Shown: positions 2,722-64,000 of the stretch, piece by piece
Position numbering within the stretch: the first letter of the stretch is position 1
Layout: the number at the start of each line of letters is the position of its first letter
Assembly (NCBI GenBank): GCA_051530055.1
Contig: CM121343.1
Coordinates: forward strand, 4,868,389-4,932,388
Length of the DNA stretch: 64,000 nucleotides
Source of the DNA: Neoechinorhynchus agilis
Lineage: Eukaryota > Animalia > Acanthocephala
Direction: 5' to 3'
Program-made: the position numbers and the translations under genes
Notes under the pieces: generated by a model
Told to the model about the DNA's origin: nothing
What the model saw: only the letters and a program-made list of their open reading frames with translations
The model's database searches: none

Positions 2722-3544
2722 TATCTCAGCAAGTTAGAGAGTAGCGCGAATGGACATTGCTTGTTCAAGATTCTTTCGTTTAAGAACTGATGACATCATC
2801 AATCATGAAAAATATAGAAAGAATCCTTTGGAAATGCAAACTTGGAGCACAAATTATGATACTCGTTTCTTGGGAGTCCTCACGGTTATTCGTAGGTAGT
2901 TGTATGACTCCATTTTCACTGCCTCTGTTTATAATATAATTGAAGGGCGCAATGTCCAAATGTCAAAATGGCCTTTAGGGGTTGCCGTAAATTATTGTTT
3001 CTTAACAAGTATTTACATGGTTTAACTATTTTCTTCCCTAGAGTATCTTAGGCTGAATATTGCGGTAACCTTGATGATTTTCATCTTACTTTAAAGGAAT
3101 TCACATGTTCGTCTTTAAAATTATGGTTTTAAAGAGATTCGTGGTTTATTTTGAATCCGCAGGAAACAAAAACTTCCCGATCACTGGTTTTGGGTATTTG
3201 ATCAAACCCAAAGGAACACGAGTGATCATGCAGGTGTGCGAAGCATTCCGCACGGTGAAACCGACGACTGATAACTCAAACACCTGCCACTGTTGCGCCA
3301 AGATAGACCAACAAAATAGTTTAATTTCGATGAGTAAAATCCGATAGTTATTTTGGACCCATCCACGGTAACGAAACATTCAGAGATAAGACAAGGTTTC
3401 TCGACAAAAACTCTCAATTGCTTTCCATTTAGCGACCATCAAACAAAAGTTTAAATCAAATATTATTTCTCGGTCTCTGGCTTGCAGAGTGTTTTGCTTA
3501 AATATTTTTATCCTTAGAGCAATAGTCGAAGTATTTTCGTTTCC

Positions 3545-4500
3545 TCTCTCTCGTCACCGTCTACTCTCTCAACAAATCAATGAAGAATGAACGGGAATCG
3601 GCGGAGTATTCCACTCTTATTGATGTTGCACTAAAGAAGTGGTTTGAACGAGTCACTGAAACTCTAAAGGACTCATTAATTGAAGCGATGAGTCTGAGAA
3701 ACGGCCTTAGAGAATTCACCATTGCTGGCATCGATCGCCCTCCTGCCTCTCGTCCTGAGTCTTCTTTGCGCCAACTTAATTCCATGATTGAGCTCATAAA
3801 CCCTACAAATTCACACCATTTCTTAATTGCAGGGGACTACAATAATTTATTTCCTCTTCTACACTTCTCCGAGTTGCGTCAACTTATTGACTTTCCAAAT
3901 CGTCTTGACGCTCACCTTGACAAAGTGGTCACAAATATCGACGCCTGCTCATCCGCCTCTGAACTCCCTCCCCCCACGAAGTCTGACCACCCTTCTGCTC
4001 TTATTACTCCCTCCACCCACCTCAGCGTTTAAAATCTCCCCGTTTACCCGTCGGGGAGAAACGTGATCAGCACATCTACAATTTTATAAAATTGTTCAAC
4101 TCTAGAGTTCGCACATTCCACTCTGACAACACAAATGACCCTTCCTCAACCATCACTAACTTCGACAATTCCCAAGAAATTCATAATCAGACACATAAGA
4201 AATTTCCCCACCAATCAATAACTCCGTCTGAATTTCTCTAAATGCTTCGAAATGATCCCCTCATTCTCGCACATCCCACCCCGAGCATCTAAATGACATC
4301 CTACGAGTCACCTTCCTAAGAATTATGAGTCTTCAATTTCAATCAAACTTGAAATGGGACTCGCACATCACTCTCTCCCTCAAGCTAAACTCCTATAAAA
4401 TTTATCTCCTCAGACGCCTCCGACATTTAGTAACTCCTTCACCCGATCTCTACAAATTTTACTTCAGCCTTATTTTACCCTTTTACAACACGTCGTTCCC
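3545..4500 (+). mobile_element. Decayed L2/CR1-like LINE ORF2 remnant (APE endonuclease and RT C-terminal pieces)
   Basis: IAGIDRPP, LIAGDYN, QLIDFPNR...LDKVVTN and SDH are APE motifs. KLNSYKIYLLRRLR...FYFSLILP is typical of the post-RT region. Several breaks in frame. Confidence 0.75.
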
Positions 4501-4799
4501 TTTTCACACGAGCACAGCACTCGTTGTCCCAATTCGTTATATCCTCCTATAACCTCGCACCTCCCTTTACCTACGCTCCTTTTTCCATGCTGCCCAATCT
4601 TTTCGGATATCATAATCAGAAATGAATCTATGGAAAAACCAACTTTACATGCGCTCCTGCAAACAATATCCGCCAATTCCCACTATAATGGGCATAACAA
4701 GACCTGATATTCCCACCAGAACGGACATCCCCGACCGGAAATTCTCACTCAGACGGACACCATAGACCGGACATTCCCACATGTATGGTCACTCAAGAC

Positions 4800-20278: not shown

Positions 20279-23160
20279 CCTCAGTAATGGAGGCAGATCT
20301 CTTCCCTCAGCCCACTTCGCTTCGATTTCGACTCGCTGTACTGTATGCGATCGCGTCATAGGCGTGACGATAAGTGGGCTCATTCGAAAACATGGCCCGG
20401 TACGATCTCGATGCCCTGGATCTTCCCTTCCACCAGTGTTGGACAAACCTTTTATCATCGACAGTCTCGAAACTCAAAATGTGATGAAGCGCCTCTTACA
20501 ATATCTTCCAAAAACGGTCTTGAAGAGGATTCCAAAAGGAGCCAGGAATGGCTGCTGTGAAATGTTCTCGAAGCTGCTGGCAAACTGCCTATCTGAACCG
20601 ACGAATACAAACTATTCACGTTTATTCGCCTTTCCAAAATTGGTTCTGAGTACTAGCCGTGACCCCGAGTCCAACCTCACGACCACCATCAAGCAGCGGA
20701 TAACCAATTTTGATCGACTTTTTGAGGAGGCTGTGACGAAAAGTTACAATAATCAAACTCTTGCCAAGAAACGTCCAGAAGGACCCTTCGGCCGTCCTTA
20801 TAATTTGAGTAATAGGATTTCTGCCAAATTGGCAGACGCAGATGTCCGTGGAGCGGTCAGGTTACTCAGTTCCACAGCTACGTTTGCGGACAACGACCGC
20901 TCGACACTGGAGGCGTTGAGAAGTAAGCATCCTTCAGCTTTGCCACCGATTTTGCCCCCGATACCGGAAAAGTCGCGTCAATCGACGAGGTGCACGCGGG
21001 AGGAACTTAGATGTGCTGTATCCTCGTTCCCCAATGGGTCGGGACATGGACCCGACGGACTTCGACCCCAACACATCAAGGATATGTTGGGATTTGGAAC
21101 GGGAGTGATGGGAATGAAGCTCGAAACCGAACTCGTTAATGTGGTCGACGAAATCATAAATGGACCTCTCCCACTTGAAGCAACGAATTTTCTATTCTCG
21201 GCATCTCTTTGCGCCCTTTCCAAACCAAACGGAGATATTCGTCCGATAGCTGTGGGCTGCACTCTAAGACGTTTGGCAGGGAAGATTTTGTGTAAGCGAC
21301 TGAGCGAAAGGGTAAGTGAGCAACTCAGACCTTTTCAGTTGGGCTGCTGTACTCCATGTGGAGCAGAAGCGATAGTGCACTCCACACGTACCTATATCGA
21401 CGCCTCTGCCACCCCAACGGTTGTCCTAAAAGTCGATTTTTCGAACGCCTTTACAGTCGATCGAACAGCCTTGCTAAGTACCATTGCTCGAGAATTACCT
21501 GAAGCCTATGAATACTTTGTGAAGGCGTATGGTTCTAAGACACCTCTACATTTCAACGAGCACACCATTTGGTCCGAAACAGGCCTGCAACAAGGCGATC
21601 CTCTCGGCCCCATAGGATTTTCCTTGACAACCAATGGAATATCTCGTAAGCTCAAGGCAAGTTTGAACGTCTGGTACTTGGATGACGCGACATTGGGCGG
21701 TGACCCAAAGACGGTTCTAGAAGACCTGCAATCCCTGCTTGTTTCTGCTGCGGAATTGGGCCTACGTGTCAACCCCGCGAAGTGTGAACTATTGCCACTA
21801 AATATTTCACATTCTCGCATGGCGGATATAATGCAGTCCTTCGAATCCGTTGCCCCAGGAATCCGATTAATCAACCGGCAAAGCTTCACTCTTCTCGGCA
21901 GTTGCGTCCTGGATGCGAACATAGATCGCGAGATTGAAGAAGAGCTCCCTAAACTGGATCTTTTGTGCTCCCGTGTTCAAGAATTGAATGCACACGAAGC
22001 TCTCTTCTTGGTGAGAAACTGCCTATACATACCGAAGCTTATGTTCAAGATGAGAGCAGCCCCGTACTTCCGACACACCAAACGTCTCCTTGACTTAGAT
22101 GGTTTGATGAAAAAGCATCTTGAGAAGGTAACGAACTGCGCCATCACTGATGAAGCTTGGCAACAAGCTGCCCTTCCGATCAAATACGGAGGTTTAGGCT
22201 TACGAAGTGTGGCTGGTTTGGCCCTTCCGGCATTCGTATCCTCGATGCACAAGACGGAGGAATTACAGGGGGAAATTCTTTTAAACAGAATGCTGAAGCC
22301 ATGCAAACTATTGAAACAGGGAGTCACATCATGGCTCTCGCAGACCGGTCTGCAACAAGCTCCAACCAACGCGCACGAACAATCTGCTTGGGATAACCCC
22401 TTAATCCTGACGGCTCACAACAAACTAAAAGGCCAGATGGACGAGATGTCTCAAGCTAGACTTGTGGCCAGTTTCTCGAATGAGTCAGGCGCATGGTTGA
22501 ACGTTTTGCCAATTGGTACTTTGGGAACTTTGCTGGACGACGAGACAGTTCGAATAGCCGTTGCTCTACGTTTAGGACTTCCAACCTGTGCCCCACACCA
22601 GTGCCGATGTGGAATAAAAGTTGACGTGCTCGGGAGACATGGACTCTACTGCAAGAGATCGAGCGGTCGTTTCCCAAGGCACGCAGAGCTCAACGCGATC
22701 ATTAGCAGAGCTCTGAACTCGATACACGTTCCAACCATCCTGGAGCCCAATCACCTCTGTCGCTCGGATGGTAAGCGTCCCGACGGTATAACCGTTTTCC
22801 CTTGGAAAGAAGGGAAGAGTCTAATTTGGGACGCAACATGCGTGGACTCACTCGCCATGTCCAACCGGCAAGATGCTTTAGCGGAGACGGGAGGAGCAGC
22901 GAGTGCCGCCGAAAGGAGGAAAGCGGAGAAATACAATGAGCTCAAACAAAATTACATTTTCCTTCCTTTCGGCGTGGAAACACGAGGGGCGCTGTTATCT
23001 TCGGCACGAAGCTTTTGTGCCGAACTCGGACGACGACTTGCAGCACAAACAGGGGAGCGACGCGAGAGGATTTTCCTGATACAAAAAATAAGCCTCGCAA
23101 TCCAACGAGGAAATGCGGTCAGCGTCCGGGGGACGATTTAATCATTTTAAAATAAAATAT
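20279..23160 (+). mobile_element. Near full-length CRE-clade non-LTR retrotransposon; single ORF with Zn finger, RT, CCHC and RLE
   Basis: Open frame 20364-23141, extending upstream to CTVC...KHGP..RCPGS. RT motifs GPDG, IRPIAVG, LQQGDPLGP, WYLDD; CCHC (CRCG..VD.LGRHGLYC); RLE RPDG..PWKEGKSLIWDATCVD; terminal QRGNA. Confidence 0.92.
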
Positions 23161-31682: not shown

Positions 31683-32650
31683 TAATAACACGTTTTATTG
31701 ATCAAAGTAGAGGATCAGTATACCTTTGGGTCCTCGTGAACACTCGAACAATATAATAGGTTAAATGGATGCAGTTTTTATTTCGGAGTGGATGACTGGG
31801 AGTCTGCAATGTTAGACCTCTCCTTCGCCTCCCGAACGCTCGAACAATATGATAGGTTCAATGAATGTGGCTGTTTATTTTAGGGTGGATGTAGGGTCCG
31901 GCCGAGTGCAGGGGAAATTGTGGTATTGTGGCTTTTCTCTGCTTCGTGAACGCTGGAACAATATGAAAGGTTCAATGAATGTGGCTGTTTATTTTAGGGT
32001 GGATGTAGGGTCCGCCGAGTGCAGGGGAAATTGTGGTATTGTGTCTTTTCTCTGCTTTGAACGCTGGAACAATATGAAAGGTTCAATGAATGTGGCTGTT
32101 TATTTTAGGGTGGATGTAGGGTCCGGCCGAGTGCAGGGGAAATTGTGGTATTGTGTCTTTTCTCTGCTTCGTGAACGCTGGAACAATATGAAAGGTTCAA
32201 TGAATGTGGCTGTTTATTTTAGGGTGGATGTAGGGTCCGGCCGAGTGCAGGGGAAATTGTGGTATTGTGTCTTTTCTCTGCTTCGTGAACGCTGGAACAA
32301 TATGAAAGGTTCAATGAATGTGGCTGTTTATTTTAAAGTGGATGTAGGGTCCGGCCGAGTGCAGGGGAAATTGTGGTATTGTGGCTTTTCTCTGCTTCGT
32401 GAACGCTGGAACAATATGAAAGGTTCAATGAATGTGGCTGATTATTTTAGGGTGGATGTAGGGTCCGGCCGAGTGCAGGGGAAATTGTGGTATTGTGTCT
32501 TTTCTCTGCTTCGTGAACGCTCGAACAATATGAAAGGTTCAATGAATGTGGCTGTTTATTTTAGGGTGGATGTATGTTCCGGTCGAATGGAAAACCTGTT
32601 GGCTATTGGTGTAGGAGAGTTTGCTCGTTTGAGAAATTCCTCTGCTATTC
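31683..32650. repeat. Tandem array of the core/spacer family: one 96-bp unit plus six 114/111-bp units and a partial seventh
   Basis: Cores (GAAC(A/G)CT(C/G)GAACAATAT...AGGTT(C/A)AATG) start at 31738, 31834, 31948, 32059, 32173, 32287, 32401 and 32515; left box CACGTTTTATTGATCAAAGTAG at 31689. Confidence 0.95.
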
Positions 32651-33189
32651 AGTCCTAAATATGTAAAAGAAAAGAAAACGATTCAGTCAATGAGTGAAAT
32701 ATGAGGCATTTTACCGATATCTCAACGTAAACACGGCCAAAAAAATGGTTTTAACGTCTACTTAAAAATGCGAAAAGAGAGCGAGAGTGAGATATCTTTC
32801 CGCGTCATCCCTAGTTTTGCTCGAGAACTTTCGCACAATATTCATCGTTTATCCGTAGGACTGCCCTACATTTCAACTAATAGTAAAAAATATTTAGTCG
32901 TTACAGAATTGCGGTTGCATGCAAAGTTTCTTTTCGTGGACGATTTTTAGCAAAATTATCTAAATGGGAGGTGCGTGTTCAAGGAAGTAATAGCCCGGCG
33001 GGTACATAGAAGATTGAATGCACCTAATTTTCCAGCAGCATTATAGCGCGAAAAAAATATTAGCTGGTACGGCACCGTCCTCGTTTGAAATCAGTGGTTT
33101 CGATGAGCGGTCGTACATTAAACGATAAATTGAGTCACAAATAATCGATTTTTTCTGACGATCAAAGGTGATGATCGTGAACATGAAGG

Positions 33190-36429: not shown

Positions 36430-38121
36430 TCAATCCGTCGCTCTCCAATCGCTGTTCTACAGCAAATTCTTGAGCGTGTCCACGTCCCTAGCTGTGAGCA
36501 CCAAATAGTCCGCGAATAGTATCGTCCACGGTGCGTTCATTTCTCTTTCCGCATTTCCTAGGACGTCTATCACGATCGTGAACAAGAAAGGGCTCAGGGC
36601 CGAACCCTGTTGCAGACCCACGGAGACTAGTCGGTCGTTCCGTTGTGGCATTGCACGCAGGTATAGCATTCTCGATACATCGCTCGAATCGCGGTGACAT
36701 AGTGTTCAGGACAATTCCTTTTCCTGAGGAATGCCCACACCAGATCTCGAGGGACTGTGTCGTACGCCCCTTCCAAATCGACTAACACACACTGTGCAAC
36801 GGGCACTGCATCTCACTGAACCTCGCATGTTTGTAGTCGTCTGCATTCGAGGCTGAAGCGTCAAAATCCAATCTTTTCCTGGCTGACTTTTTCAGACTGA
36901 TTGCGTCCTTGACGAATGGATTCCACCACCATCCCCCTTTGTTATGGGGTGGGTTTACTCGATGTCATTCCTAGGATGTTCTTTGCTTGACTACGAATCG
37001 ATTCGGCTGTCTCATTCCACCATCGTTCCAGTTCAGCCGAATTCTCGCTCAATTTCTGGGTTAGCACCATTTTCATCTTTTCCATGAGTATGGGATCCTT
37101 TAGCCTCCACCACTTGATTTTAGGTGCAATGCTCGTTGTCGGCTGTTTGACTCTCCCTCGAATATTGAGGCCCATCACAAGCACTCTATATTGCGTGGTG
37201 CACTCCTCTCCTAATATTATCTTTACATTCTGAACTTCACCCCATCTCTCTATCGGATACAAAATGAAATCGATTTGGCTTGATCTTCCACCGCTTGAGT
37301 ATGTATAAAGGTGTCGTGGGTCTTTTTTGTAGTATGTATCGGAAATACGCAGCTCCAACGCTGCTGCGTAATCCAATAGTCTTACACCCTCGGCGTTCCT
37401 TGATCCTACACTGTGTCCTTCATGAATTCGCTCGTATCCATCTCTCGGCCTCACGTGCCTGTTGAAATCGCCGGTTTATTCCGCATCGACCCTAGGCATT
37501 GTCACTTCCAATAAATCTAGCCAAAATTGCTTCTTCTCCGCTTCACTACAACCGACTTGTGGGGCGTACGCAGAAACTATTGTCGTGGCTTCGCCGTTAA
37601 CGCTTACCTTCAGCACCATTACCCGATCGCTTGTTCGTGTCACCTCTACGACGTTGTCCACTAGGTCCTTTGATACTATGACGCCCATTCCGTTTTTGCC
37701 ACTTGCTCCTCCACTATAGAATAGTTTAAATCCGTCGCCTAATTCTTTAACCTTCCCTCCTTTCCATCTGATCTCCTGGACGCCAAGAATTTCGATTTTT
37801 CTCCTCATCAATTTGGCCACTTCCCTGCTTCTCCCGGTCATTGAACCTACGTCCAGGGTGCCGATTCGTATTTTGAAAGCGACTCGCTTCTTTAGTCGAA
37901 CCCGTCGTTGATCCGGTAACCCCGAATAATTTTTCACAAACCCCGGGGCGCCGGGTCTGCGCGTCGCATGAAGGGAACGCCCTAGCCCGATTGATCGGAG
38001 GTATTAGACTTGATATTGCTGATGTGTTTTTGGCTCAAGGTTTTACGGTCGGATGCCCTTCCTGACGCCAACCCTCCCCAATTGTCCGGGCTTGGGACCG
38101 GCACCGGGTCACCCCGATGGC
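36430..38121 (-). mobile_element. RTE-clade LINE with 5' end present, internally deleted, frameshifted and 3' truncated
   Basis: APE motifs (IGTLDVGSMTGRSRE, ILGVQEIRWKG, SAYAPQVG, SQIDFIL) and RT fragments (VGLQQGSALSPFLF; LFADY in place of FADD). Confidence 0.9.
38068..38120 (-). ncRNA. Twister ribozyme core at the RTE 5' end; 5' P1/P2 strands missing
   Basis: The minus strand reads GCCATCGGGGTGACCCGGTGCCGGTCCCAAGCCCGGACAATTGGGGAGGGTTGG: a hairpin followed by the conserved twister core. Confidence 0.7.
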
Positions 38122-48149: not shown

Positions 48150-50140
48150 TAAAAGCACGTTTTATTGATCAAAGTAGGGAAAACATGTACCTCTGAGTCC
48201 TCGTGAACACTCAAACAATATTTTAGGTTAAATGGATGCAGTTTTTATTTCGGAGTGGATGACTGGGAGTCTGCAATGTTGGACCTCTCCTCCGCCTCTC
48301 GAACACTCGAACAATATAATAGGTTCAATGAATGCCGACGTTGATTTCGGCGTGGATGAAGAGTCCATTGAATTGGAAAGTTGGTGGTTATTGGCGTGGA
48401 AGAGTTTGTCAGGTTGTGTCTTTTCTCGGCCCCGTGAACACTCAAACAATATTTTAGGTTAAATGGATGCAGTTTTTATTTCGGAGTGGATGACTGGGAG
48501 TCTGCAATGTTGGACCTCTCCTCCGCCTCTCGAACACTCGAACAATATGATAGGTTCAATGAATGCCGACGTTGATTTCGGCGTGGATGAAGAGTCCATT
48601 GAATTGGAAAGTTGGTGGTTATTGGCGTGGAAGAGTTTGTCAGGTTGTGTCTTTTCTCGGCCCCGTGAACACTCAAACAATATTTTAGGTTAAATGGATG
48701 CAGTTTTTATTTCGGAGTGGATGACTGGGAGTCTGCAATGTTGGACCTCTCCTCCGCCTCTCGAACACTCGAACAATATGATAGGTTCAATGAATGCCGA
48801 CGTTGATTTCGGCGTGGATGAAGAGTCCATTGAATTGGAAAGTTGGTGGTTATTGGCGTGGAAGAGTTTGTCAGGTTGTGTCTTTTCTCGGCCCCGTGAA
48901 CACTCAAACAATATTTTAGGTTAAATGGATGCAGTTTTTATTTCGGAGTGGATGACTGGGAGTCTGCAATGTTGGACCTCTCCTCCGCCTCTCGAACACT
49001 CGAACAATATAATAGGTTCAATGAATGCCGACGTTGATTTCGGCGTGGATGAAGAGTCCATTGAATTGGAAAGTTGGTGGTTATTGGCGTGGAAGAGTTT
49101 GTCAGGTTGTGTCTTTTCTCGGCCCCGTGAACACTCAAACAATATTTTAGGTTAAATGGATGCAGTTTTTATTTCGGAGTGGATGACTGGGAGTCTGCAA
49201 TGTTGGACCTCTCCTCCGCCTCTCGAACACTCGAACAATATGATAGGTTCAATGAATGCCGACGTTGATTTCGGCGTGGATGAAGAGTCCATTGAATTGG
49301 AAAGTTGGTGGTTATTGGCGTGGAAGAGTTTGTCAGGTTGTGTCTTTTCTCGGCCCCGTGAACACTCAAACAATATTTTAGGTTAAATGGATGCAGTTTT
49401 TATTTCGGAGTGGATGACTGGGAGTCTGCAATGTTGGACCTCTCCTCCGCCTCTCGAACACTCGAACAATATGATAGGTTCAATGAATGCCGACGTTGAT
49501 TTCGGCGTGGATGAAGAGTCCATTGAATTGGAAAGTTGGTGGTTATTGGCGTGGAAGAGTTTGTCAGGTTGTGTCTTTTCTCGGCCCCATGAACACTCAA
49601 ACAATATTTTAGGTTAAATGGATGCAGTTTTTATTTCGGAGTGGATGACTGGGAGTCTGCAATGTTGGACCTCTCCTCCGCCTCTCGAACACTCGAACAA
49701 TATAATAGGTTCAATGAATGTCGACGTTGATTTCGGCGTGGATGAAGAGTCCATTGAATTGGAAAGTTGGTGGTTATTGGCGTGGAAGAGTTTGTCAGGT
49801 TGTGTCTTTCCTTCGCCTCGTTAGCACTCAAACAATATGATAGGTTCAATGAATGTGGCTGATGATTTTGGAGCGGTGGGAGAGTTGGTAGTTATTCGCG
49901 TCGAGTAAAGTTTATTAAGTTGGGTCTTTCTTCAGGTTCATTTCAAGTTCTGATATCCGAGAGAAGATTGGACAGCATGGAGAAAGAAGCGGAAGTAGAG
50001 GGAGGTGTGAGGCATAGAATGATGAAAAGAATTGGGATTAAGAGTGTTGTGCTCGTTTGATTCTGGTGTACGTTAGAAACCCAACTTTTCTTACCCATAG
50101 TTGGAAACCATGCTGATTGGGAGCTCGGGACCAAATCTCA
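48150..50140. repeat. Tandem array of the core/spacer family: seven 231-bp units (96+135 dimer) with unique flanks
   Basis: 15 cores from 48205 to 49822 with alternating 96/135 spacing; the same 22-nt left box at 48156; the 96-bp subunit matches 31738-31833. Confidence 0.95.
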
Positions 50141-50666: not shown

Positions 50667-51533
50667 TTACTGATGTTTTAAATGATCCGTATTTTTTTTA
50701 TCGTCGTTTCCTAAATGAGCCAGTTTGTTTAGCATAGCAGAAGACTTTAAGAAGCTCATATTGCCATCGTGAGCACTAAGAATGCCTTTCTTTCCATTGA
50801 TGAGTGGTGGATAATCTTTTCTGTCATTTGCACCAGCATTACCTTTAATATAGGCTCTAATGAAGAAGTGACCAAATAGGATGAAGTACGTAAGATATAT
50901 AATGAACGAGTATTGGATGTTCTCATCGCTGATGGCACAAGGTCTCTGTTGCTTCACGTGATAAGCCACATAGTTAATAACACAGCCGACAACCATTTGT
51001 AATATTTGCAATATCGTAATGACTTTGCTAATAACCAATGGCACCCTAAACTTTAGTGATTTAAAAGCATAATAAGAGTACATGATCGAATGCACGCCCA
51101 TGTTCATTATGACAAACCAGCGCCCTGAGGCGGCGAAATCGTGGTATGAATACCAACTATAAATCAGTACTGTAGAATGATGGAACCAATGAAGAAATAT
51201 CAAACGTTGCTTCCTGAGTACGATGAATACCGTATCTACGAGCTCCACAACTTTGCTGAGAATAAACACCCATGACCAGTAACCAGCCACGCCGTACGCG
51301 TTACTATTATTGCACACTGAATATTCGACGCCATAATTTTTAAGAACGAAAACGAATTCGGGTAGAACACGGACGAATCCAGCAATGCTGAAAATAGCCA
51401 GAATGCAATTCCAAACGGCCAATGGTAAACGCAACTCAAACTTCGGTCTATTCCTCATTAGACTTTGACCAGTGAACGTAAAGAGAATATAAAGCGCTGC
51501 AAAGAGGATACTTTTGTTCCAGTTTGCATACAT
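50667..51533 (-). CDS. ELOVL6: Very-long-chain fatty acid elongase, ELOVL3/6 type; frame extends upstream to a probable acceptor near 51674
   Basis: LSKVVELVDTVFIVLRKQRLIFLHWFHH (histidine box), MNMGVHSIMYSYY, ITILQILQM; upstream in-frame FQFEENF. Confidence 0.92.
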   Translation of the reverse strand: MYANWNKSILFAALYILFTFTGQSLMRNRPKFELRLPLAVWNCILAIFSIAGFVRVLPEFVFVLKNYGVEYSVCNNSNAYGVAGYWSWVFILSKVVELVDTVFIVLRKQRLIFLHWFHHSTVLIYSWYSYHDFAASGRWFVIMNMGVHSIMYSYYAFKSLKFRVPLVISKVITILQILQMVVGCVINYVAYHVKQQRPCAISDENIQYSFIIYLTYFILFGHFFIRAYIKGNAGANDRKDYPPLINGKKGILSAHDGNMSFLKSSAMLNKLAHLGNDDKKNTDHLKHQ

Positions 51534-52015: not shown

Positions 52016-55000
52016 TCATAAAAGTTTTCTGCTCGGGCGTGGTCCCCTCTTATACACACTCTTCTTCGACCGAGACTTCCATTTATCGCGAGTGAACTTA
52101 CGCTTCCTCTGATTAAATTTACTGGCACTCGGATTGTAGCAGCATCTCGATAATGGCGACACTGACGAACTCAAACGCAATCGCTCACTCCCAGGTTTCA
52201 ACGAAGCGAATTTCGACGTTACTCGCAGTAATGCATCGCCCCCATATTTATCATACTTCTCCTGAGTCATCCCATCTATGCCACCAATCATCTCACCTTT
52301 CGTCTTCGGGAGTTTTACTGACATTTCCTTCAACGTCTCTTCAGTGAATACCTCACACTGCATGGATTCCGAAAGATCAAAACTAAGCGTGCCTATTCGT
52401 TGCTTCAACACTCGTTTCAAATCCTTCATACAGTCACTTTTCAGCTTGTGCTCACGGACGTTCAACGCACTGGTCGGCATAGTGTTACTATTTCCAGCTC
52501 TTATCTTCATAATTAACTTATAATCGCCTTTCAACACATTCTTGCCCAGTTCAATATAGGCCACGGTCGTGTCGTGGCTAGTGGTTTCGATCTGCTGTCT
52601 CAAATATCCTTCAAGTAAAAGCCTTAGCATAATTCGTTCAATTGTATGGCGGTTATGTTTGCTAGCACATCCATAGCCATTCGTCTCAGACGACTCAACC
52701 AACTTGCTTGAACCTTTGAATATATCGACTAACGTCGGCAGGGTAAACCGCCGATTATAGGAATTTGTCAGCACGGGGATCGCATTGAGGATTGTGTGTG
52801 ATACCTTGGTAATATCCACTTCTTCTGTTTTCGTCTTATCAGAACAATTATCACATTGGAAGTCTAATGTAATAGAGTGATCATCGCCGTGCTCAATCAA
52901 ACCGCACTTTGCCTCATCAAATGACTCGCCAAAATATGCTAATATCTGCTTACGCCTACAATCGACACGATTCTCACAATATTGAACAACCCTATGTAAA
53001 TTATCCACAGTTCGAGCAGCACTAGATGATGCAGCGAGTCTTTTTATTTTACTCATATCTCTATAGGAATAAAAAATAACGCAATTCGCGAGGCCGCCAT
53101 CACGACCAGCTCTTCCTGATTCCTGGTAGTATCCTTCAATGGACTTTGGAATTGTTAAATGAAATACAAACCTTACATCCGGTTTGTCAATTCCCATTCC
53201 AAATGCTATCGTCGCACATATCACTTTATAAACGAACACGCTGATATGTGCTTGATTTCTTGGAACAGTCGAAAGTATTTTGTGGGAAAAACTTTCCCCT
53301 TTATCAACATTATAATCCCTACAAGTTCAAAAACCTATAGTTCATTTCAATTGCTGCGCTCAAAGTGGAATTTTTCTCACTTTACGACAGTGTGATGGAA
53401 CGTTTGTGTGTGTGTGCATCCGGTCTTAGGTAGGTACTATCACTATTGTCTACAAAAGTAAAAAGCCCAAAATGATGAATTTAGCCATCGAGGGGTTAAG
53501 GAAGCAGCGCAGCCGTGATCGATTTACACACGTCATTAATCCAATTGAGTTGCACACGAACACGGTCGCTGTCGCTCATTCCAGCGTGATAAGGTTCAGA
53601 CGAGATTCCATTAGATTGTAGAAAACGACATGTATTTTCACTCTCTTTCCTCGAAAAGCAATAGACGATTCCAGCGGACTGTCTACCGTCCTCAGTTACT
53701 TCACTTTTGACCATTTGTAGTAGCATTCGAAGTGCTGCTACATTGCCAGGTTTCGAAACAACCTGGTATTTCAAATTGCGGCGATTAAAACTCTGCAAGA
53801 ATAACTTAAACTCATTAGATGCTTCTTGGGATGTAGCCTTTCCCGATATTTGATGAAGAACATCCTTACGGACACGTTCAGTTGCTGTTGCGGTGATTAG
53901 CATAATTGGGACAGAAGGAAATTGTCGACGCAATTCACCAAGCTGTTTGTAGTCTGGTCTAAAATCATGACCCCATTCACTGATGCAGTGGGCTTCATCA
54001 ATTACGAATCTGCATAACCTATTGACGGTGTATAGGTGCTTCAGAGCTTTTGACACTTGGGTAGACATAGAAAGTTTCTCGGGTGTAAGGTAAACGATTT
54101 GTAGTGGAGGCATTATCGATCCAACAGTTTTCTTTCCTATTCCAAATAAGGCAGATAAAACAGCTGATGGTGGCTCAGAATACCAAGATCGGCACATAGG
54201 TGGTGCACTAAAGATATCCAAATGTCCCATTTCCTTGCAGAGATGAGCTGCTCCTACGCCCAGTAGTGTTAGTTTCCGAACCTGGTCGAATATTAACGAC
54301 TTGAGTGGAGAAACCACAAATGTAATCCCTTCTTGTACCACTGCGGGGATCTGATAACATAGACTTTTTCCAGCGCCCGTAGGCATAATCACGAAGCAAT
54401 TTTGTTTAAGTAGAGCAGCATTAATAACTTCAAGTTGATTGTGGCGGAAATGTTTAAGACCGAAAATTGAATGGAACACGTTAGCAACCTTACTCGAATG
54501 GTCGTAGGCGGTCCCAGTGTACGTTTCGCTGTCATCGTGGACATCAGTCGATAACCAACGAATATTTGTATCAATCTTGTTCCGTTTTGAAGCGAACATT
54601 TCAGAATGTTCACTCATTGAACATACCATTGACGATGATGTTTGTGGCTTTTGTGTAGAGGTGCAAATCCGGCAACCATTGCTTTTCGAAACGCAGTCTA
54701 AGCAAAAACTATGACCACAAATTTCAGACACTCTTCTCTTCGAAGGCACAAATTGATCATAGGAAGAATTACAATGACTGCATTGGAGAGTACCAATAAC
54801 ACTTATTTCAGCACACTGATCGCCACAATCAATATGTGAAGCCGGCTCGTCTTCCTCGCAAATATAATTCAAGCGAAAGCGGCAAGATGCATTATTATCC
54901 TGGTCATATCGATTTGCACCATTGATTGCACCCGTTTCGTCGCTTTTAGCGAATTCCCTGAATAAAGAAAAATCCGTAAAACGAATTATTATACACCGTC

Positions 55001-56249
55001 AGCATTTAGAAGTGATCAATTATCTAGTCAACCATAATAACAGGGCAACAAAATTCATAAGAAATGAACATTATATCCCCTGATGGGGAAAACTTCAGCA
55101 AAGTATGATCCAGCGATCGATTCGTTTAGAAGTTAAAAATTTATAATTTAGGTCGAAAAATGAGGAGCATAGGTGCTCAAACATTTTTCCGAAGGATAGA
55201 TTTTTTTCTGGATTTTTCTTACGTCAATTTGATCTGAAAAACCTATAAATGTAGACGAATTCATTGAACGACATTTTTTATTGTTTATGATTTCAACAGT
55301 TTCCATCAAAATAGCATGATTTCTGAAGTGGTTAATTTATATTTGCTAGGCTAGAATACAAATGCTTGATCATCGATAGAAAATCCTTCGGTTTAATTAA
55401 AGCGAATAAAACACTTTAACAATGATTGAGGAGCCGAGGTTACCTACCGAAATATTTCCAATAAATAAAACATGTGATTACCGGGATTATTCTCATCCAA
55501 AAGTATACAAATGCTTCAAATTTAAACATGATAAAAATTTTATGATCTGTGTAAAACTCATGAGTACGTTTCACTATTTTGTTCATTTGGGCAGAATCAA
55601 ACGTTTGAGCAGTTCTCCAAAATTTATGGACCTAAAAGCTTTATATCAAAATCAAATTTATGACTTTAGCAACCGAGATTTTTTAACCGAATGTAAAACG
55701 ACGTCAAAAATTGTCAATAGTTCCGGAGCAAATCGCCAAAAGAAGCAATTGGGCATGAACCGAATTCAAAAAGTGCATCGTCAAATCAGAATCAATAAAG
55801 TAAGGATGGAATAAGAAATAATTATTCGAATACCTCAGAAATTGCTTATTTGTGCACTCTATTTTTGAGCACGGTTCTGACGATGGCACAACATTGTCCT
55901 CATTATAATATTTGGAACTTTTATGAATTGGTTGAGCGTTGTGGAGTCCGTCCGGATGAATATCCCTGGATTTCTTGTAGACATTAAATATTGATTCATT
56001 TTGCCTTTTATTTGTTGGTAAGGAAGCCGTACAATCTAAGGCTCTACCTGACGACGGCAGAATGGAAACCTTCGGGATTCCTTTGAGAACATTGACATAA
56101 GATGAAACTCCATCAGTACACTGATGAACGGCTAATTCTTTAATAAATTGAAATCGATCTTCACGTCCAGATTCAAGTAATTTAATCCCATTTTCAGCTG
56201 CCCGGAAGGAAATCAAGTAACCGCTTATATTATTCTTGGGTTTAAGCAT
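52016..56249 (-). CDS. BLM: BLM/Sgs1-like RecQ helicase (N-terminal region, RING, helicase, RQC, HRDC); predicted exons 56249-55834, 54957-~53526, ~53224-52016
   Basis: [81 protein letters not shown] Zn motif (CRR...YFGE...CDNC), HRDC-like region and basic tail. The phase-2 donor at 55833 matches a phase-2 acceptor (AG 54959-54958). Exon 1 starts MLKPKNNI, reminiscent of BLM/Sgs1 N-termini. Confidence 0.85.
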
Positions 56250-57569
56250 TAATATCTCCCTGGTAGGTTAATGGAGAACGAAATGTACTAGTGACGTAAT
56301 ACAAATTGGATTGAGAAGAATTCACTTCTAATTAGTCAAGACTTTTCAATGTCCAACAAACGATCAATTCTTTCGATACTTTGGAGCTATGACGTTTCCC
56401 ATTTGCTTCAAAGGAAATTCTTCCTAAACTGTCTTTCCTGATCCGCCGCTCTTCATTGTCCAACTTATCGCCATTGCGATAATTAGTGTCGTTGGGCCAT
56501 CCATCGCAGAATTTCGAGCACCAAAATTCGAAAATGACCAACAGCTTTTATCAGATAATCAACGATTCAAAACGTTCGAAACTATAATTTGCTATTTTGC
56601 ATTAATTGTCGTAAGAAGCGAATATTGACTTCCAATATCCATTGAAATTCACTGCACGCAGTAAAACTGCAATTAGGTACTTGTTGCGATTCCGCTGTGA
56701 CCCGAATAAAATGATCAATCTCATTAAGTTTTGAGACTCATCGCAAATGGTCGTACCTCGAACGAACTCATGATTTTTACAAAAAAGGCTCCTAAGGAAT
56801 TGTTTCGCTAGCATCGAATCCGTCCAAAAAGGAGTAAATGGCACGGAAGAACACTGAGCTTCTAACGTACTCATGAGTTTTACACAGATCATAAAATTTT
56901 TATCATGTTTAAAATTGAAGCATTTGTATACTTTTGGATGAGAATAATCCCGGTAATCACATGTTTTATTTATTGGAAATATTTCGGTAGGTAACCTCGG
57001 CTCCTCAATCATTGTTAAAGTGTTTTATTCGCTTTAATTAAACCGAAGGATTTTCTATCGATGATCAAGCATTTGTATTCTAGCCTAGCAAATATAAATT
57101 AACCACTTCAGAAATCATGCTATTTTGATGGAAACTGTTGAAATCATAAACAATAAAAAATGTCGTTCAATGAATTCGTCTACATTTATAGGTTTTTCAG
57201 ATCAAATTGACGTAAGAAAAATCCAGAAAAAAATCTATCCTTCGGAAAAATGTTTGAGCACCTATGCTCCTCATTTTTCGACCTAAATTATAAATTTTTA
57301 ACTTCTAAACGAATCGATCGCTGGATCATACTTTGCTGAAGTTTTCCCCATCAGGGGATATAATGTTCATTTCTTATGAATTTTGTTGCCCTGTTATTAT
57401 GGTTGACTAGATAATTGATCACTTCTAAATGCTGACGGTGTATAATGATTCGTTTTACGGATTTTTCTTTATTCAGGGAATTCGCTAAAAGCGACGAAAC
57501 GGGTGCAATCAATGGTGCAAATCGATATGACCAGGATAATAATGCATCTTGCCGCTTTCGCTTGAATTA
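54865..57569. repeat. 706-bp inverted repeat pair (54865-55570 and 56864-57569) around a 1293-bp spacer
   Basis: The arms are reverse complements from TAATTCAAGCGAAAGCGG... to ...AAACTCATGAGTACGTT, with only two mismatches noticed; both arms encode the same MIEEPRL...VKLMST peptide. Confidence 0.95.
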
Positions 57570-59262
57570 CGAATCTTGAAGGCGTTTTAAGCAGTCTTTC
57601 TTGGCGACCAGCACTCACCGTTTTCCATGATCAAATTTAAAGTCAGTAGTATTCAAAAGCTCGTTAATAATCGCGCGCAAGTCCGGCTTTTGCCACAGTG
57701 TCGCTCTCAATGAAATTCATTGAACGATCCATGAGATATTTTTCTCCGTGAGTCTACTTCGATGATAGATTTCACATATAGATGCTTATTGTGTACGAAA
57801 AGAGCGTTTGAATGTTTTTTTAAATCGCTTTAAAAGTCGAGTATTTATGATGACTTGAGAGTAAAGGAACAAAAGTAGCCGTTGGTGCTATTGTATTTTC
57901 TTGCCATGGCTGTTAAGTAATATGTCGCATTCCTCTACGGTAACAAATGAAGGTAAAACTTGATTCCTGCTCCCAAGTGTGACAATTGTGATAGGAACAT
58001 TTGTTGACAAAGGTAAAAATGGTTCAATAGAATGATGAGTGGGTATGATTCTGCTATTTAACAGGAACGCATTGTTACCATGATGTGAATCACCCGTCCT
58101 CAGTTGTCCCTTTAGTCCTGACAACCAGTGAGCGTGCCGCACTTGTAAAAGGCACACCAGGAAAGGCAACAGCGCCACCTTCGCCCGCGGCATAAAGCAC
58201 AAAAATGCTGTCCTTTCTACCTAATAAGATGATCAACGAATCAGATGAAGATTATTTCGAAAGAACGAGAAAGGTAAGATAATAATCATAGAAAGGTCGT
58301 CTGAGGTCTCCATGGCTATTTTACACGCCGCTTGAAATGCACTCACTTTTTTTACTTCCGAACACTGCATAAAAAATGCATTTCTGTGTCTAACATCGTT
58401 AACACTTTTTCTCTGTCCCAGTTGTTTAAAAAAAGGAACCCAGTGAGGTTTGTGTATCTCAGTATCATTCACTTTATTTCTTGTCTCCTAGCTTATATTT
58501 TAGTTTTCGACCATAGACACTTCTAATTTCTCTACACATTTGAATCATTTTACAGCTTACCACTAACGAACATCCAGCGAACTGTCAATTAAAAATTTGA
58601 AAGGAAAAAGAAAACGCCCATCGTAATCCACGAGTATTTGCGAATCCTTGCGTATTATCCGAAAATCTGCTTGGCAAACGTTCATCCTTTCAAATGAATG
58701 TGAACCAAAATATGTGCATTTTAGCAGTAGGTGTGACTATTTTGTACGTACGCTCAAAAGTCATTTCATTTTAAATTTGAAGCCAGTTTGAGCTCAAAGA
58801 AAACCAACCGATCAAATCGTTCAGTTGAAGAGATCTGAGAATCAAATGAAATATGTCTTTCGAAGTACCTAAGAGCATTTGTTCCCTGCTAAAAAAATAG
58901 ATTGGCGAGTTCAGATGTAGCTTCTTCAAATCTTTTAAAAATAACCACTTTAAGGTAAAACATCGGCGACTTTAAAATCTCCGTTGTGGAATTTTATTAA
59001 GAAGAAACACTCTAAATGTTTATACGAGTTGCGTAGTGGCTTGAGTCATCAAGGTTTCTTCATTTTGCACACCTAAACTGAGCCAGAAAAATTGGGTTGC
59101 ATCCATTCCCTGAGCTCCTCCAATGGTATTCTCGTTGAAAGCGTGTTGGCCAAAATTCTATTAAAAAGCTCTTTAATCAAATCAATAGATGTTAGATTTT
59201 CCGCTCATCCTTCATTTTATTCCATTGCGATTCTGCAAATAGTGCTTTATAACCAATTATAT

Positions 59263-59396
59263 TTTTGGTCTTCGGTGAGCTGTTACCACCCCGAGAATTA
59301 AATATTTCGGAACCTGATGGAACTCAGGTTCCGAAATATTTAATTCAATAATTAATGTTTAATTCTGGGGTGGTGACAGCTCACCGAAGACCAAAA
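59263..59396. repeat. Nested hairpin, MITE-like
   Basis: Outer arms TTTTGGTCTTCGGTGAGCTGT.ACCACCCC and GGGGTGGTGACAGCTCACCGAAGACCAAAA; inner arms GAATTAAATATTTCGGAACCTGA and TCAGGTTCCGAAATATTTAATTC. Confidence 0.85.
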
Positions 59397-60980
59397 TTAG
59401 ATCAAAGAAATTATATTTTTATCGAGAATTTCAGCATTCGGCGTTTATCACAAGCCGATTTTAGATGGTACTGGAAAGTTTGAAGAGCAATAACATCGAA
59501 ATGGAAACCCAAGCTCAAAAAACATTAAAAAGCATCCCCATTGACCTCTCTGAAGCGCGGATTGCATTACAATTGACACGCAGAAAATTTACCCCATCTT
59601 GATTCCCCGACTTTATGGAAACCAGGGTGAGGTAACGGTGACGAGGTGACCGGCCGATTTTCTCATTTGCATATGGAATCTTTCTTGATTTTCTAAGAAT
59701 ATTTCTAGCGATATTGGATCTGATTGAGTATATTTTTATCCGCTTCATGGAATTATTCCGAAAGGATTTGCCGGCTGATGATAATCGATTACCAAAGACA
59801 ATTGCCGTGATTTATACCGAGATGTACGATACTATAATGAACCCAATGGTTTTCCTGCAATCGGCAACATGTATTTATAAATATTTCCAGGCGCTAAAGG
59901 CTGATAAAATAATGTACTACGCCGTTACGGGTCAGGATCAACTTTTCATTGTGATTTGTTAAGTTACATTTTTAGACGAGATTAAATCTTTAGCAACAGT
60001 GTTCGGCACGAATGTCGTCACTTCTGGTTCAACCTCAGTTACGTTTCTCTCTTATAAAGACACGCTCAAGGGATTAATCCGAATTCAACCGGGATTGAAA
60101 AACCCTTGTAACGGTCTGTCGGAAAGTAGAACGGATATCATAAGAACTCTTTTTGAACGTAAACGACTTTTTCTCTACTAAAGTGTGACATTCCAGCCAA
60201 AAAACAATTTAGTTAACTTCCCAGACCGTCCACAGCCGCAGCTCGCTTTGGTCATAGGACATACAATGACGACTTCAGGATTTGACCCATTGCTCATTCC
60301 GTTCACAGAATTCAGGTAGATTTTCTGTTTGCATTTAACTAACCTTCAAAAAAATACATAGGCTCATTAAGTCAAGTGCTTTTGTTTGCTCGGCAACGAT
60401 AAGAAACGCTGTTCGTTCGTACTGTGGAGTCCAGCAGAATTACGGGAAATGACAGAGCGTAATAAATTATATAGTTTTGATTATTACGTGGCTCATTTTG
60501 ATTTATATGTACATTTGCGCGATGCAGCAAGGCAGTTACACGCACCGTCTAAGGATTGCCATTTGAACGAGAAGTTTTAACTTAGTCTCTAATGGTAGTC
60601 AATTGGGAAATATTCGAAGAATACTTTGGTTAAGAATGAGCGATTGACTAAACAAACGTGTTCAACCAGTTTCATTCTTAAGCAGTTAAAAGAAAGGTGA
60701 AAATCAAATAATTTGGACTGAGATCAGTACTATCTGTTTGAATTAATTCAAAAAGGAATACTTTAACAGTTCCGATGAGAATGGAGAAACATGCCTCGAG
60801 GAAGCATCCAGCATTCCCCCTCTCAATCGCTCACTCTCCTATAAAAATAGTTGGCTGCACGGGTCAAAATTCTGCGATGTTTGGTCCGCTCACATTGTCG
60901 CCAAATATAAAACAAAATTATGAATCTATTTTAGTGTTCATTATTTGCGAATATATACTCACGCCTTTTATTGACGATTG

Positions 60981-63375
60981 TTAGACGAACGAAATGTCCC
61001 TTCCGTCACTGGTTATTTGAATCACATCCAGTTTTTCATACTCCGCAATGGCTTTTTTGAATTGCTCTTGATCAAAACCTCGATTGATCACTCTTTCAAG
61101 CGCGTCATCGAATTTAATGGTTCTTAGCAAGCTCCTATCTTGGCGTTCAATATTCGCAGGTATGGATTCCTTCAAAAGTTCCCTAAGAATTGCGAATATC
61201 TGATCGACGTCGTTAAGTTGATTTATTGGATCTTCCTGTCCGGTAACGAGCGATTGTTTGCTCATGTCCATCAACCGTATAGCTTCTTCTACATCCTCGC
61301 GCTCAATCGATCGACTCAGGCGAACTCGAGCATGAGCACTAGAAAGACGGAGAATGGCCAGGAGTGTACGAGCCGAGGTATATCCCCTGATTTTCTTATT
61401 CCGTTCATTTCTAGCTTCTTCCCTCATTTGAACATACGCACTGATTATAAAATTAAAAAGATCCGTAGATACACTCGTCTCTACTCGCTTACAAGCATTT
61501 ATGTACTTCCTAAAAGTTACCATATCCAGTGGTTGACGTTTCAGTGACCAATGATCTCCTGAAGGCTGCCGTTCATACTGATGAACATGTACAATGTGCT
61601 TAGCCAACCTGTAATCCGCGTCATGGTCAGCCCTGTCTTGCATGACCCATAGAAGGTCGAATCTGGACAAGAGAGCGGCTGGAAGCTGGACATTCTGTGC
61701 AACTGTCTTTTGAACATTGTAACGGCCGTATGCTGGATTAGCGGCTGCCAGAATGCTCACCCGGGCGTTAAGACTCGTCAATATACCCGCTTTTGCCACG
61801 CTTATCGTCTGTTGTTCCATCACCTCATGAATAGCAGTTCGGTCCGTTTCGGTCATTTTGTCGAATTCATCAATACAACAAACACCGCCATCAGCCAAAA
61901 CAAGAGCGCCACCTTCCAAAATCATTTCGTTTGTAGTTGGATCTCTTAAAACGGCTGCTGTTAAACCAACACCCGATGAACCACGTCCTGTCGTATACTG
62001 ACTTCTTTGCGCTAATCTGGCTATATAAGACAACATTTGGGATTTGGCTACTCCAGGATCACCCATCAAACATACGTTTATATTCCCACGGATTTTCATC
62101 CCTTTAGAAGCGTGGTCTACACCACCGACCAACATCAATACCAATGCCTTCTTTATATCTTCATGACCGTAAATCTCCGGAGCTAAACTTGAAGCTAACG
62201 TTTCGTACATGTCGTCGCCGTATTCTTCACGCAGTCGACTAATTTCCTCTCTCGTAATTTGAGAATCTATCAGAGAGGTTCACATGACGGCGAGAAAATC
62301 AAGGCTTATTTTCACGAATTAGTGTCGATCTACACTAGGAAATTTAATAAAGATCAAAACATCTAACTTATGAACCCCATATGTTTACGTCATCGTCTGA
62401 TTTATTGACTTTGATCAGTTGATGAGCCACCAACGCTACATCCGTAAGAAGGCCCTGCATCATTTGTTTGTAAGGAGTATTCTTTTGAACGGGCATAAGA
62501 ACGCCCGTTATTTCAACGATCTCTCCTGGCTTACATTGTCTTGTGTTTTCACCTATACACCAAACGACTAAACTGCTGGGGATTCCACCAACCGGTACTT
62601 GTTCGCTAAGCTCTTGGACCCGTATTTCCTGGAATTTCAGGAACTTTGATCCTTTCGATTGAAGTGTGAGAGTTCCCGTGGTTCTATTAACCATACATTC
62701 TTTACCGGGACAAGCGGTCAATGGCATAAAAGTAGGTGACGTGATCGGCTGATATGTTTCGATACCGCATCGATCGCAAGTGTACGTTGCGACAGCAAGC
62801 ATTGGTTTCACCTCAGATATTCTTGTAACTATCGATTTTATCCATATCAAGCGGCCAATACTGCTGGATTTTATGTCTCGAGTCGATAATCGTTTTGTGT
62901 GCGATGGAGGATGAAAATAAATGTCGAAACGTAACTTCAACTCGTCCGGAACACTCGGCATCAATTCCGGCTTCCGTGCATATCCGCCGATTTGTCGTTC
63001 TTGTTCGACTCGCTGAGCATATCTTTGAGCATTTAAATATTCACAAGTCTCAATGTATACATCCAGAGCGTCCTTACGACCAACGGGTATGTTTCCACCT
63101 TCTAAAGCAGAATCCTTGTACTTATCAATCAAATCACCTATGACTTTAGCGAACAAGCGCACATACCGAGGACTGTTGACCATCATGAATGAAGCCAACT
63201 CGGAGTCGACCGTTTCGACATCGTCCAGGAAAATGGTGACCGATCGCTTACTTCGAACCGATACGCGCTTCACCTCATCGATATACTTCAGATCGCCTTG
63301 TTTTGATTTGAAATTTTCGAGAAAGTGTCGAATCTTCTCCCTATCAGCTTCATAATCTCGAATCACAGTCGTCAT
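60981..63375 (-). CDS. MCM7: DNA replication licensing factor MCM7, one intron near 62267-62375
   Basis: [43 protein letters not shown]...[64 protein letters not shown]. Confidence 0.97.
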
Positions 63376-63465: not shown

Positions 63466-64000
63466 ATGTTTCACAAAAAAAGGAAAGAAGTAAACAAGCA
63501 AGAGACAGTGAAATCGTCCGCTTATTATAGAATCCAACGAGACCTGGCGGACTTGAGGGACCTTCCGGCTGGATGCAAACTTAAATTCGACAACACAGGC
63601 GACATCATGAAATTCCAAGTCCTAATGAACCCCACCGAGGTAGGTCCAAGATTTGAACCTTCGCCAACTAACAATTCCATCAAGGGTTACTACACTTACC
63701 AGAATATCAAATTTACAGTAACCATCCCTCCCGATTACCCATTCGATCCTCCCAAAGTAAAATGCGATTCACCAATATATCATCCAAACATAGACACAGC
63801 GGGCGGCGTTTGCCTGACCATCCTGAGGTTCGAAATTTGCAGGGCAGGGGGTAGCACTGTTTTAAATTCTTTCGTAGTAATAAATATACAAAATTAGTGA
63901 CGTAACGATTACTATAGGGAAGAATGGAGGCCAGTACTATCTATCTTGTCGGTTATAATTGGACTTTTTCACGTTTTGATTGAACCGAACGCCAATGATG
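63466..64000 (+). CDS. UBE2M: NEDD8-conjugating enzyme Ubc12, with introns; runs off the window end
   Basis: SAYYRIQRDLADL-DLP, PPDYPFDPPKVKC..PIYHPNIDTAG.VCLTILR, then EEWRPVLSILSVIIGLFHVLIEPNAND. Confidence 0.85.

Follow-up and report, generated by a model that had tools for sequence, protein, structure and literature searches.

The window analyzed here is the whole stretch of 64,000 nucleotides (nt) taken from contig CM121343.1 of the acanthocephalan Neoechinorhynchus agilis (assembly GCA_051530055.1, forward-strand positions 4,868,389 to 4,932,388), and the coordinates below are positions within it unless a contig is named. The gene under study, on the minus strand, is the BLM (Bloom/Sgs1-type RecQ helicase) orthologue of a syndermatan animal, and ahead of its helicase core it carries a RING-HC (C3HC4) zinc finger. 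This RING is a genuine domain in the helicase frame, with a predicted RING-like fold, and it has been held by selection while the remaining N-terminus diverged beyond alignment. We are close to certain of the architecture and of its conservation, and the annotation label that we suggest for the gene is BLM orthologue with N-terminal RING.

A BLM helicase gene with a RING in frame

The minus-strand frame is open from 54998 to a stop at 53496 and holds both the RING and the helicase. By direct translation, the eight ligands at 54782-54663 read C-x2-C-x17-C-x-H-x2-C-x2-C-x6-C-x2-C, and the two loops (x17 and x6) lie within the spacing that defines a RING-HC, C-x2-C-x(9-39)-C-x(1-3)-H-x(2-3)-C-x2-C-x(4-48)-C-x2-C. 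Counted from the last RING cysteine, helicase motif 0 (FGLKHFR) begins about 66 residues on and motif I (MPTGAGKS) about 93 residues on. The original prediction, made from the letters of the window alone, had claimed a complete C3HC4 RING with all eight ligands, fused in frame about 70 residues before a BLM-like RecQ core, and both claims stand. A regular-expression scan of the six frames of the window found the stop-free RING-HC pattern at this single place, and none of 300 first-order Markov resamples of the window contained it.

In Pfam searches, the first large open reading frame (ORF) matched DEAD (5.8e-23) and Helicase_C, and the ORF at 53239-52016 matched the rest of Helicase_C (1e-8), RecQ_Zn_bind (1.4e-14), RQC (3.7e-13), and HRDC (2.1e-5), so that all five domains of the RecQ/BLM set exceed the Pfam cut-offs. 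We propose a three-exon model (56249-55834, 54957-53528, and 53223-52016; Table 1), the product of which is 1,017 residues long and has one terminal stop, the RING at residues 198-237, and motif I at residue 330.

Upstream of the RING, exon 2 offers no ATG in frame. One would be provided by an open frame of 187 codons that begins at 56249 with an ATG and lies about 750 nt upstream, on the gene strand. Its product aligns with the PxNNLxxxL ... GFTFKK signature of the BLM proteins of Pomphorhynchus laevis and Seison and of deuterostome-type BLMs, and the phase of its donor (GAG/GTATTC at 55833) fits the junction to 54957. With this putative splice, the window protein has the BLM-type N-terminus, PxNNLxxxL followed about 28 residues on by FxFKK; human BLM, yeast Sgs1, and Drosophila Blm share with it the RecQ core, both N-terminal motifs, and a basic C-terminal tail. 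The string KKSFTFKKSS at about 60170-60140, first read as the FTFKK motif of BLM, was rejected because it lacks an in-frame ATG and because exon 1 at 56249 has both N-terminal motifs at the right spacing. A tblastn search with the N-terminus of the P. laevis protein (residues 1-170) gave no match to an N-terminal exon, and a low-stringency search of 54800-61000 with rotifer N-termini returned noise only.

Homologue alignments place intron 2 between NWINDV and ICATIAFG, where the sole frame-consistent splice runs from GTAAAT at 53527 to AAAG at 53224. Within the helicase, 54251-54072 encodes, between motifs Ia and Ib, about 22 residues that P. laevis and other BLMs lack; a small in-frame intron was considered as the cause and rejected, no credible donor having been found.

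Table 1. Features of the BLM gene and of the inverted repeat beside it, in window coordinates
Feature	Start	End	Strand	Remarks
Exon 1 (proposed)	55834	56249	-	ATG at 56249; BLM N-terminal motif ...RFQFIK; putative
Intron 1 (proposed)	54958	55833	-	876 nt; acceptor ttattcag/G at 54957; putative; holds most of the left arm of the inverted repeat
Exon 2	53528	54957	-	Pre-RING segment, RING, 66-residue linker, helicase lobe 1, part of lobe 2; DEAD at about 54440-53871
RING-HC (C3HC4) zinc finger	54663	54782	-	Residues 198-237 of the proposed protein
Intron 2	53224	53527	-	304 nt, GTAAAT...AAAG; position matches the P. laevis intron
Exon 3	52016	53223	-	End of Helicase_C, RecQ_Zn_bind (about 53065-52844), RQC (about 52828-52496), HRDC (about 52351-52235), basic C-terminal tail, stop
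Inverted repeat, left arm	54865	55570		706 nt, with 613 nt in intron 1 and the other 93 nt opening exon 2; stops 83 nt upstream of the RING
Inverted repeat, right arm	56864	57569		Lies 615 nt upstream of the putative ATG; repeats, in antisense, the beginning of exon 2 and a portion of intron 1

The fold and the nearest relatives of the RING were assessed with a profile of 15 sequences that includes the orthologues described below. Searched against PDB, this profile found RNF4 as its best match (E 2e-8, 36.9 bits), followed by TRIM32 (1.8e-7, 33.8 bits) and TRIM31 (32.5 bits), with TRIM21 also within a few bits of RNF4; the lead of RNF4 over the TRIM RINGs is about 3 bits. Comparison of the profile with the RNF4 RING by hhalign covered the whole domain (probability 97.8%, E 7.8e-13). 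An RNF212/Zip3-type RING, which has a short loop 2, reached 70% in hhalign over the second half only and was rejected as far below RNF4. An AlphaFold2 model built on a 14-sequence alignment, in which zinc is absent, gave the RING core a predicted local distance difference test score (pLDDT) of 85-91. With this predicted core, the top 50 matches in Foldseek are nearly all RINGs, including TRIM23 and TRIM32 (probability 0.99, root-mean-square deviation 0.8-1.2 Å), at E-values of 0.15 or higher that are non-significant because the domain is so small. Judged by sequence, the nearest RING types are the RNF4 type and the TRIM type.

Conservation across Syndermata

Orthologues were collected by an exhaustive HMMER search with an alignment reaching from the RING to motif I, then by a regular-expression scan and cluster look-ups. 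A first search with the helicase gave matches at 41-45% identity, and of the seven candidates that a word-index search of proteins returned for an alignment of the RING alone, none scored. The RING-BLM proteins found are those of Pomphorhynchus laevis (Acanthocephala; KAI0988344.1, P0142, 1,066 residues, RING at 172, named 'hypothetical protein' in the source), Seison nebaliae (KAI3379888.1, P0275, 1,068 residues, RING at 161), and Brachionus plicatilis (RMZ97470.1, P0132, 'Bloom syndrome-like protein', and RMZ97471.1, P0134, 'RecQ2B'), together with several rotifer-like sequences and rotifer contigs from metagenomes and Logan. P0125, a close relative, carries the source name 'bloom syndrome protein'. 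One metagenome contig holds a single ORF of 762 codons with the same RING 220 residues ahead of the helicase, and a Logan contig likewise carries the RING. RING and helicase thus share one ORF in some orthologues, in independent genomes and at the same position.

The closest relative is that of P. laevis, with 47% identity over 54557-53505, 43.6% over exon 3, and an E-value of 2.6e-7 for the RING region in tblastn. In P. laevis, the RING occupies its own exon directly before the helicase exon, with a 42-nt GT..AG intron between them, and the position of intron 2 is common to both genes.

The original prediction had staked itself on related species keeping the zinc ligands, and they do so: all eight are invariant in the 15 orthologues, at an identity of only 20-28% between the aligned RING segments. 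An aromatic residue at C2+4 is also kept across the 15 sequences, as is an Arg in loop 1 that is nearly invariant. Outside the group, the RING pattern was found in none of 47 non-syndermatan long BLM homologues (49 were retrieved in all), nor in the 8 kb upstream of BLM in the cestode Hymenolepis diminuta. The RING-BLM design is therefore common to the sampled Syndermata, which comprise Acanthocephala, Seisonidea, and Monogononta.

Two other readings of the matches were rejected. Poly-Asn, AT-rich JGI/ENA matches had raised the question of a fungal or amoebal origin, which was dropped because the cluster names were Pomphorhynchus, Seison, and Brachionus. A 'second RING ORF' of contig L001 (275-159), considered as a stand-alone RING paralogue, belongs to the second of two head-to-head BLM paralogues in a Brachionus-like rotifer, a paralogue whose exon 1 reads MNREFKFKIS. 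Two such Brachionus-like contigs, L001 (3-731 on the minus strand and 1001-4570 on the plus strand) and L004 (2190-7958), hold two head-to-head BLM paralogues, each with a RING. In both, an SLX1 nuclease gene lies directly downstream of BLM, where the window has an ELO elongase gene (50667-51533).

Blm-like helicases with a RING-Ubox have already been reported in the bdelloid Adineta vaga (Hecox-Lea & Mark Welch 2018, BMC Evol Biol 18:177; PMC6264785), so the architecture was known for a bdelloid. In that species, the RING-Ubox is fully conserved between two Blm copies, its flanks have Ka/Ks above 1, and the Blm copies are differentially expressed around desiccation (PMC6264785). The report covers A. 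vaga alone, suggests no function, and does not use the word 'ubiquitin' (PMC6264785); our literature searches found no other treatment of the RING-Blm architecture. Going by its published description, the A. vaga protein resembles the window protein in combining RING and RecQ within Syndermata and in having a strongly conserved RING beside a fast-evolving N-terminus. The two differ in that A. vaga has five copies, with HRDC detectable in one, and the window has a single gene with the complete set, HRDC included. The architecture on which the original prediction had drawn its conclusion is thus partly an already described one, published for A. vaga (PMC6264785) and general in the sampled Syndermata. 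What is new is the extension of a single-species report to the sampled syndermatan lineages, including the parasitic acanthocephalans and Seison, together with an account of the sequence logic of the domain and the failure, under test, of the SIM feature and of most RNF4-membership features.

Comparison with RNF4 and other RING proteins

RNF4/Slx8 and the window RING are alike in several respects: both are of the RING-HC type, with a long first loop, an aromatic residue at C2+4, R-[LIV] before CGHxFC, and a functional link to BLM/Sgs1. However, the RNF4 protein is small and has SUMO-interacting motifs (SIMs), four of them in tandem, and a C-terminal RING, whereas the window RING is internal and its surroundings are not enriched in SIMs. 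A DNA-dependent ATPase motor and a RING are likewise joined in one polypeptide in Uls1/Ris1, Rad5/HLTF, SHPRH, and Rad16, and Uls1 also contains SIMs and shows a genetic interaction with sgs1 (PMC8161396). These Uls1/Rad5-type proteins are SNF2-family translocases with the RING between the motor lobes, in contrast to the window protein, a superfamily-2 RecQ helicase with the RING in its N-terminal regulatory region.

Several observations weigh against a RING that serves the ubiquitin system in this protein. As a single sequence, the window RING scores below the curated Pfam cut-offs, with zf-RING_UBOX at 20.6 (full exon) to 23.1 against 25.2 and zf-C3HC4 at 20.8 against 21 for the isolated domain, so significance appears at the profile level only; a RING match by domain models, as the original prediction expected, is thus obtained with the 15-sequence profile (2e-8 for RNF4) but not with the single sequence. 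We infer exon 1 and its splice to 54957 from the genomic letters, and the RING depends on them for a start codon. The Ile before C2, the Met after C2, and the Pro after C7 of RNF4 correspond in the hhalign alignment to His, Asn, and Arg in the window RING, and the linchpin Arg after C8 corresponds to Thr; that place is taken by neither Arg nor Lys in any of 14 BLM-fused RINGs, and across the same 14 the RNF4 E2-contact positions (where RNF4 touches E2, the ubiquitin-conjugating enzyme) are variable and mostly polar. The window RING therefore has neither the canonical E2-binding surface nor the linchpin Arg/Lys. The roles of these residues in RNF4 reportedly come from the RNF4-UbcH5a~Ub work of Plechanovova et al. 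in 2011/2012. The window protein, P. laevis, and Brachionus have a loop 2 of no more than six residues, with a shortened central helix. Finally, RNF4 needs a C-terminal aromatic tail for its obligatory dimerisation and activity (PMC8161396), and no such tail is present here, the RING being internal (residues 198-237 of 1,017) and followed by a Ser/Thr/Lys-rich linker without a conserved aromatic residue.

Adjacent SIMs find no support. The strings YICEEDE and EISVIG, which had been noted just before the RING as SIM-like, do exist as stated, but they are short and of low information. The window pre-RING region holds one SIM core (ISVI); a strict SIM core lies within the 25 residues before the RING in 3 of the 14 orthologues, against 2.8 expected from shuffling, which is chance level, and none was found there in P. 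laevis. In the linker between RING and helicase, a poly-acidic stretch with an [ILV]x[ILV][ILV] motif occurs in 8 of 14 rotifer orthologues and is absent from the window protein and P. laevis. Nor is the loop that had suggested RNF4 a signature of that protein: the pattern R-x-[LIV]-x2-CGH-x-[FI]-C is not specific, and TRIM32, TRIM31, and TRIM21 score within a few bits of RNF4. Of the proposed likeness to RNF4, what survives is that it is, by about 3 bits, the nearest solved RING by sequence; its E2 contacts, linchpin Arg, and dimerisation tail have no counterpart here.

Other features of the window

The BLM locus is gene-dense and intron-poor. By eye, its neighbours include an MCM7-like gene in two large ORFs (60981-63375, minus strand) and the single-exon ELO gene, a fatty-acid elongase on the minus strand; 63466-63897 on the plus strand holds an E2 ubiquitin-conjugating fragment (UQ_con 9e-18). 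The two arms of the inverted repeat beside BLM are 100% identical, and their 1,293-nt spacer holds the proposed BLM exon 1; this 706-nt repeat reflects either an inverted duplication of very recent date or a fold-back artefact of the assembly. The same region of the assembly has another near-perfect palindrome, formed by a single-exon PCNA gene (1933-2721, minus strand), present in two inverted copies about 8 kb apart (CM121343.1 4861207-4863995 and 4869321-4872109), which are identical at 2,788 of 2,789 positions over 2.8 kb; the second copy lies just outside the window.

Tandem arrays occur at 48202-49855 (231-nt unit, 7.2 copies, 98% identity), where the array separates the ELO gene from its neighbour, and at 31834-32586 (114-nt unit, 6.6 copies, 96% identity), where the array reads as a repetitive ORF of 269 codons (31849-32658). 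A 925-residue ORF at 20364-23141 (plus strand) has a reverse-transcriptase domain (RVT_1, 7e-20) and is read as a non-long-terminal-repeat retrotransposon; two shorter ORFs further on (36942-37937, minus strand) look by eye like fragments of another retroelement. A scan of the window against Rfam gave no matches.

Possible functions of the BLM RING

Our best single guess, still a tentative one and somewhat short of an even chance, is that through its RING the helicase is linked in cis to the ubiquitin system. We prefer it because the nearest relatives of the domain are all active ligases and because BLM/Sgs1 is controlled by RING ligases elsewhere: BLM is a substrate of RNF4 and RNF111, and Slx5/Slx8 were identified through synthetic lethality with sgs1 (PMC8633118, PMC10542384, PMC8161396). 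In such a mechanism, the RING would bring charged E2 to the places where BLM is loaded, such as stalled forks, D-loops, and double Holliday junctions, and would work either directly as an atypical ubiquitin ligase (E3) or by forming a RING-RING pair, with another copy of itself or with a partner. The outcome would be local modification and turnover of BLM or of the proteins around it. The equivalent in trans would be provided by RNF4 or RNF111 in other animals and by Slx5-Slx8 in yeast.

Nearly as likely is a RING that is not catalytic and serves as a zinc-stabilised module for interaction or oligomerisation, like those of BARD1, BMI1, and MDMX. A module of this kind could stand in for the helical bundle through which vertebrate BLM N-termini oligomerise, or it could dock BLM on Top3/RMI1, on another RING protein, or on nucleic acid through its conserved basic loop. 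The conservation pattern fits this reading, since the 15 orthologues have polar or varying residues at the E2-contact positions and at the linchpin while the ligands, the C2+4 aromatic, and the loop-1 Arg are conserved; loop 2 is short at six residues, and loop 1 carries a basic motif, K-R-R or K-K-K-R-R. C2 is preceded mostly by Ser, His, Gln, or Lys, and inactive partner RINGs such as BARD1 are similar at this position. However, many active RINGs lack the Arg linchpin, the nearest sequence relatives RNF4, TRIM32, and TRIM21 are all active E3s, and hydrophobic residues or Pro are retained at E2-contact positions in some orthologues, as in CPVC..L (L004), CPIC (P0147), and CPTC (P0123 and P0124).

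The idea with which the original prediction had begun, a cis-acting SUMO-targeted ubiquitin ligase (STUbL) of the RNF4 type, whose SIMs, beside the RING, would recognise poly-SUMO on proteins of forks or junctions for ubiquitination by the RING, now looks improbable. RNF4 is the top PDB match of the RING profile, the acidic [ILV]x[ILV][ILV] linker motif is present in those 8 of 14 rotifer orthologues, and a connection between BLM/Sgs1 and STUbLs is established biology (PMC8161396, PMC8633118). Yet the pre-RING SIM cores stand at their chance frequency and the acidic linker motif is missing from the window protein and P. laevis; moreover, acidic-hydrophobic patches, SIMs included, are ordinary in BLM N-termini. 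The lead of RNF4 over the TRIM RINGs is only those 3 bits or so, and the tandem SIM array, the C-terminal dimerisation tail, and the equivalents of the linchpin and Met are all absent. The chance level of SIMs together with the missing tail and contact features of RNF4 leave this model weakly supported.

It is very improbable that the RING stretch lies outside the mature protein, through a start at the Met 12 residues past the RING or through a fusion made by rearrangement or misassembly: exon 2 lacks an in-frame ATG upstream of the RING and an arm of the perfect 706-nt inverted repeat ends within that exon, 83 nt before the RING, but no stop interrupts the frame from the RING into the helicase, three out-of-frame ATGs upstream in exon 2 argue against a 5' untranslated region, the same RING lies at the same place in independent genomes (in some of them in a single ORF with the helicase), a plausible exon 1 with the BLM N-terminal motif provides the ATG, and the repeat's sense arm adjoins the gene without a break.

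Implications for BLM in Syndermata

The presence of the fusion in the sampled syndermatan lineages indicates that it is ancient, that parasitism did not bring its loss, and that it has no tie to the asexuality or desiccation tolerance of bdelloids. The normal control of BLM/Sgs1 acts in trans, through RNF4, RNF111, RNF8/168 and, genetically, through Slx5-Slx8, and a BLM with a conserved RING of its own is a natural experiment. Because the conserved positions (the ligands, the C2+4 aromatic, and the loop-1 Arg) and the non-conserved E2 contacts are now defined, concrete mutants can be designed.

The fuller form of the ubiquitin reading, that the syndermatan BLM RING is an active ligase which has internalised STUbL-type control of BLM/Sgs1, a rewiring with a single origin in the ancestor shared by rotifers and acanthocephalans, seems to us possible but rather unlikely. 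If it were true, the helicase would ubiquitinate itself or its junction and fork partners where it acts, and this could contribute to the unusual recombination and repair of the group, including the gene conversion and radiation tolerance of bdelloids.

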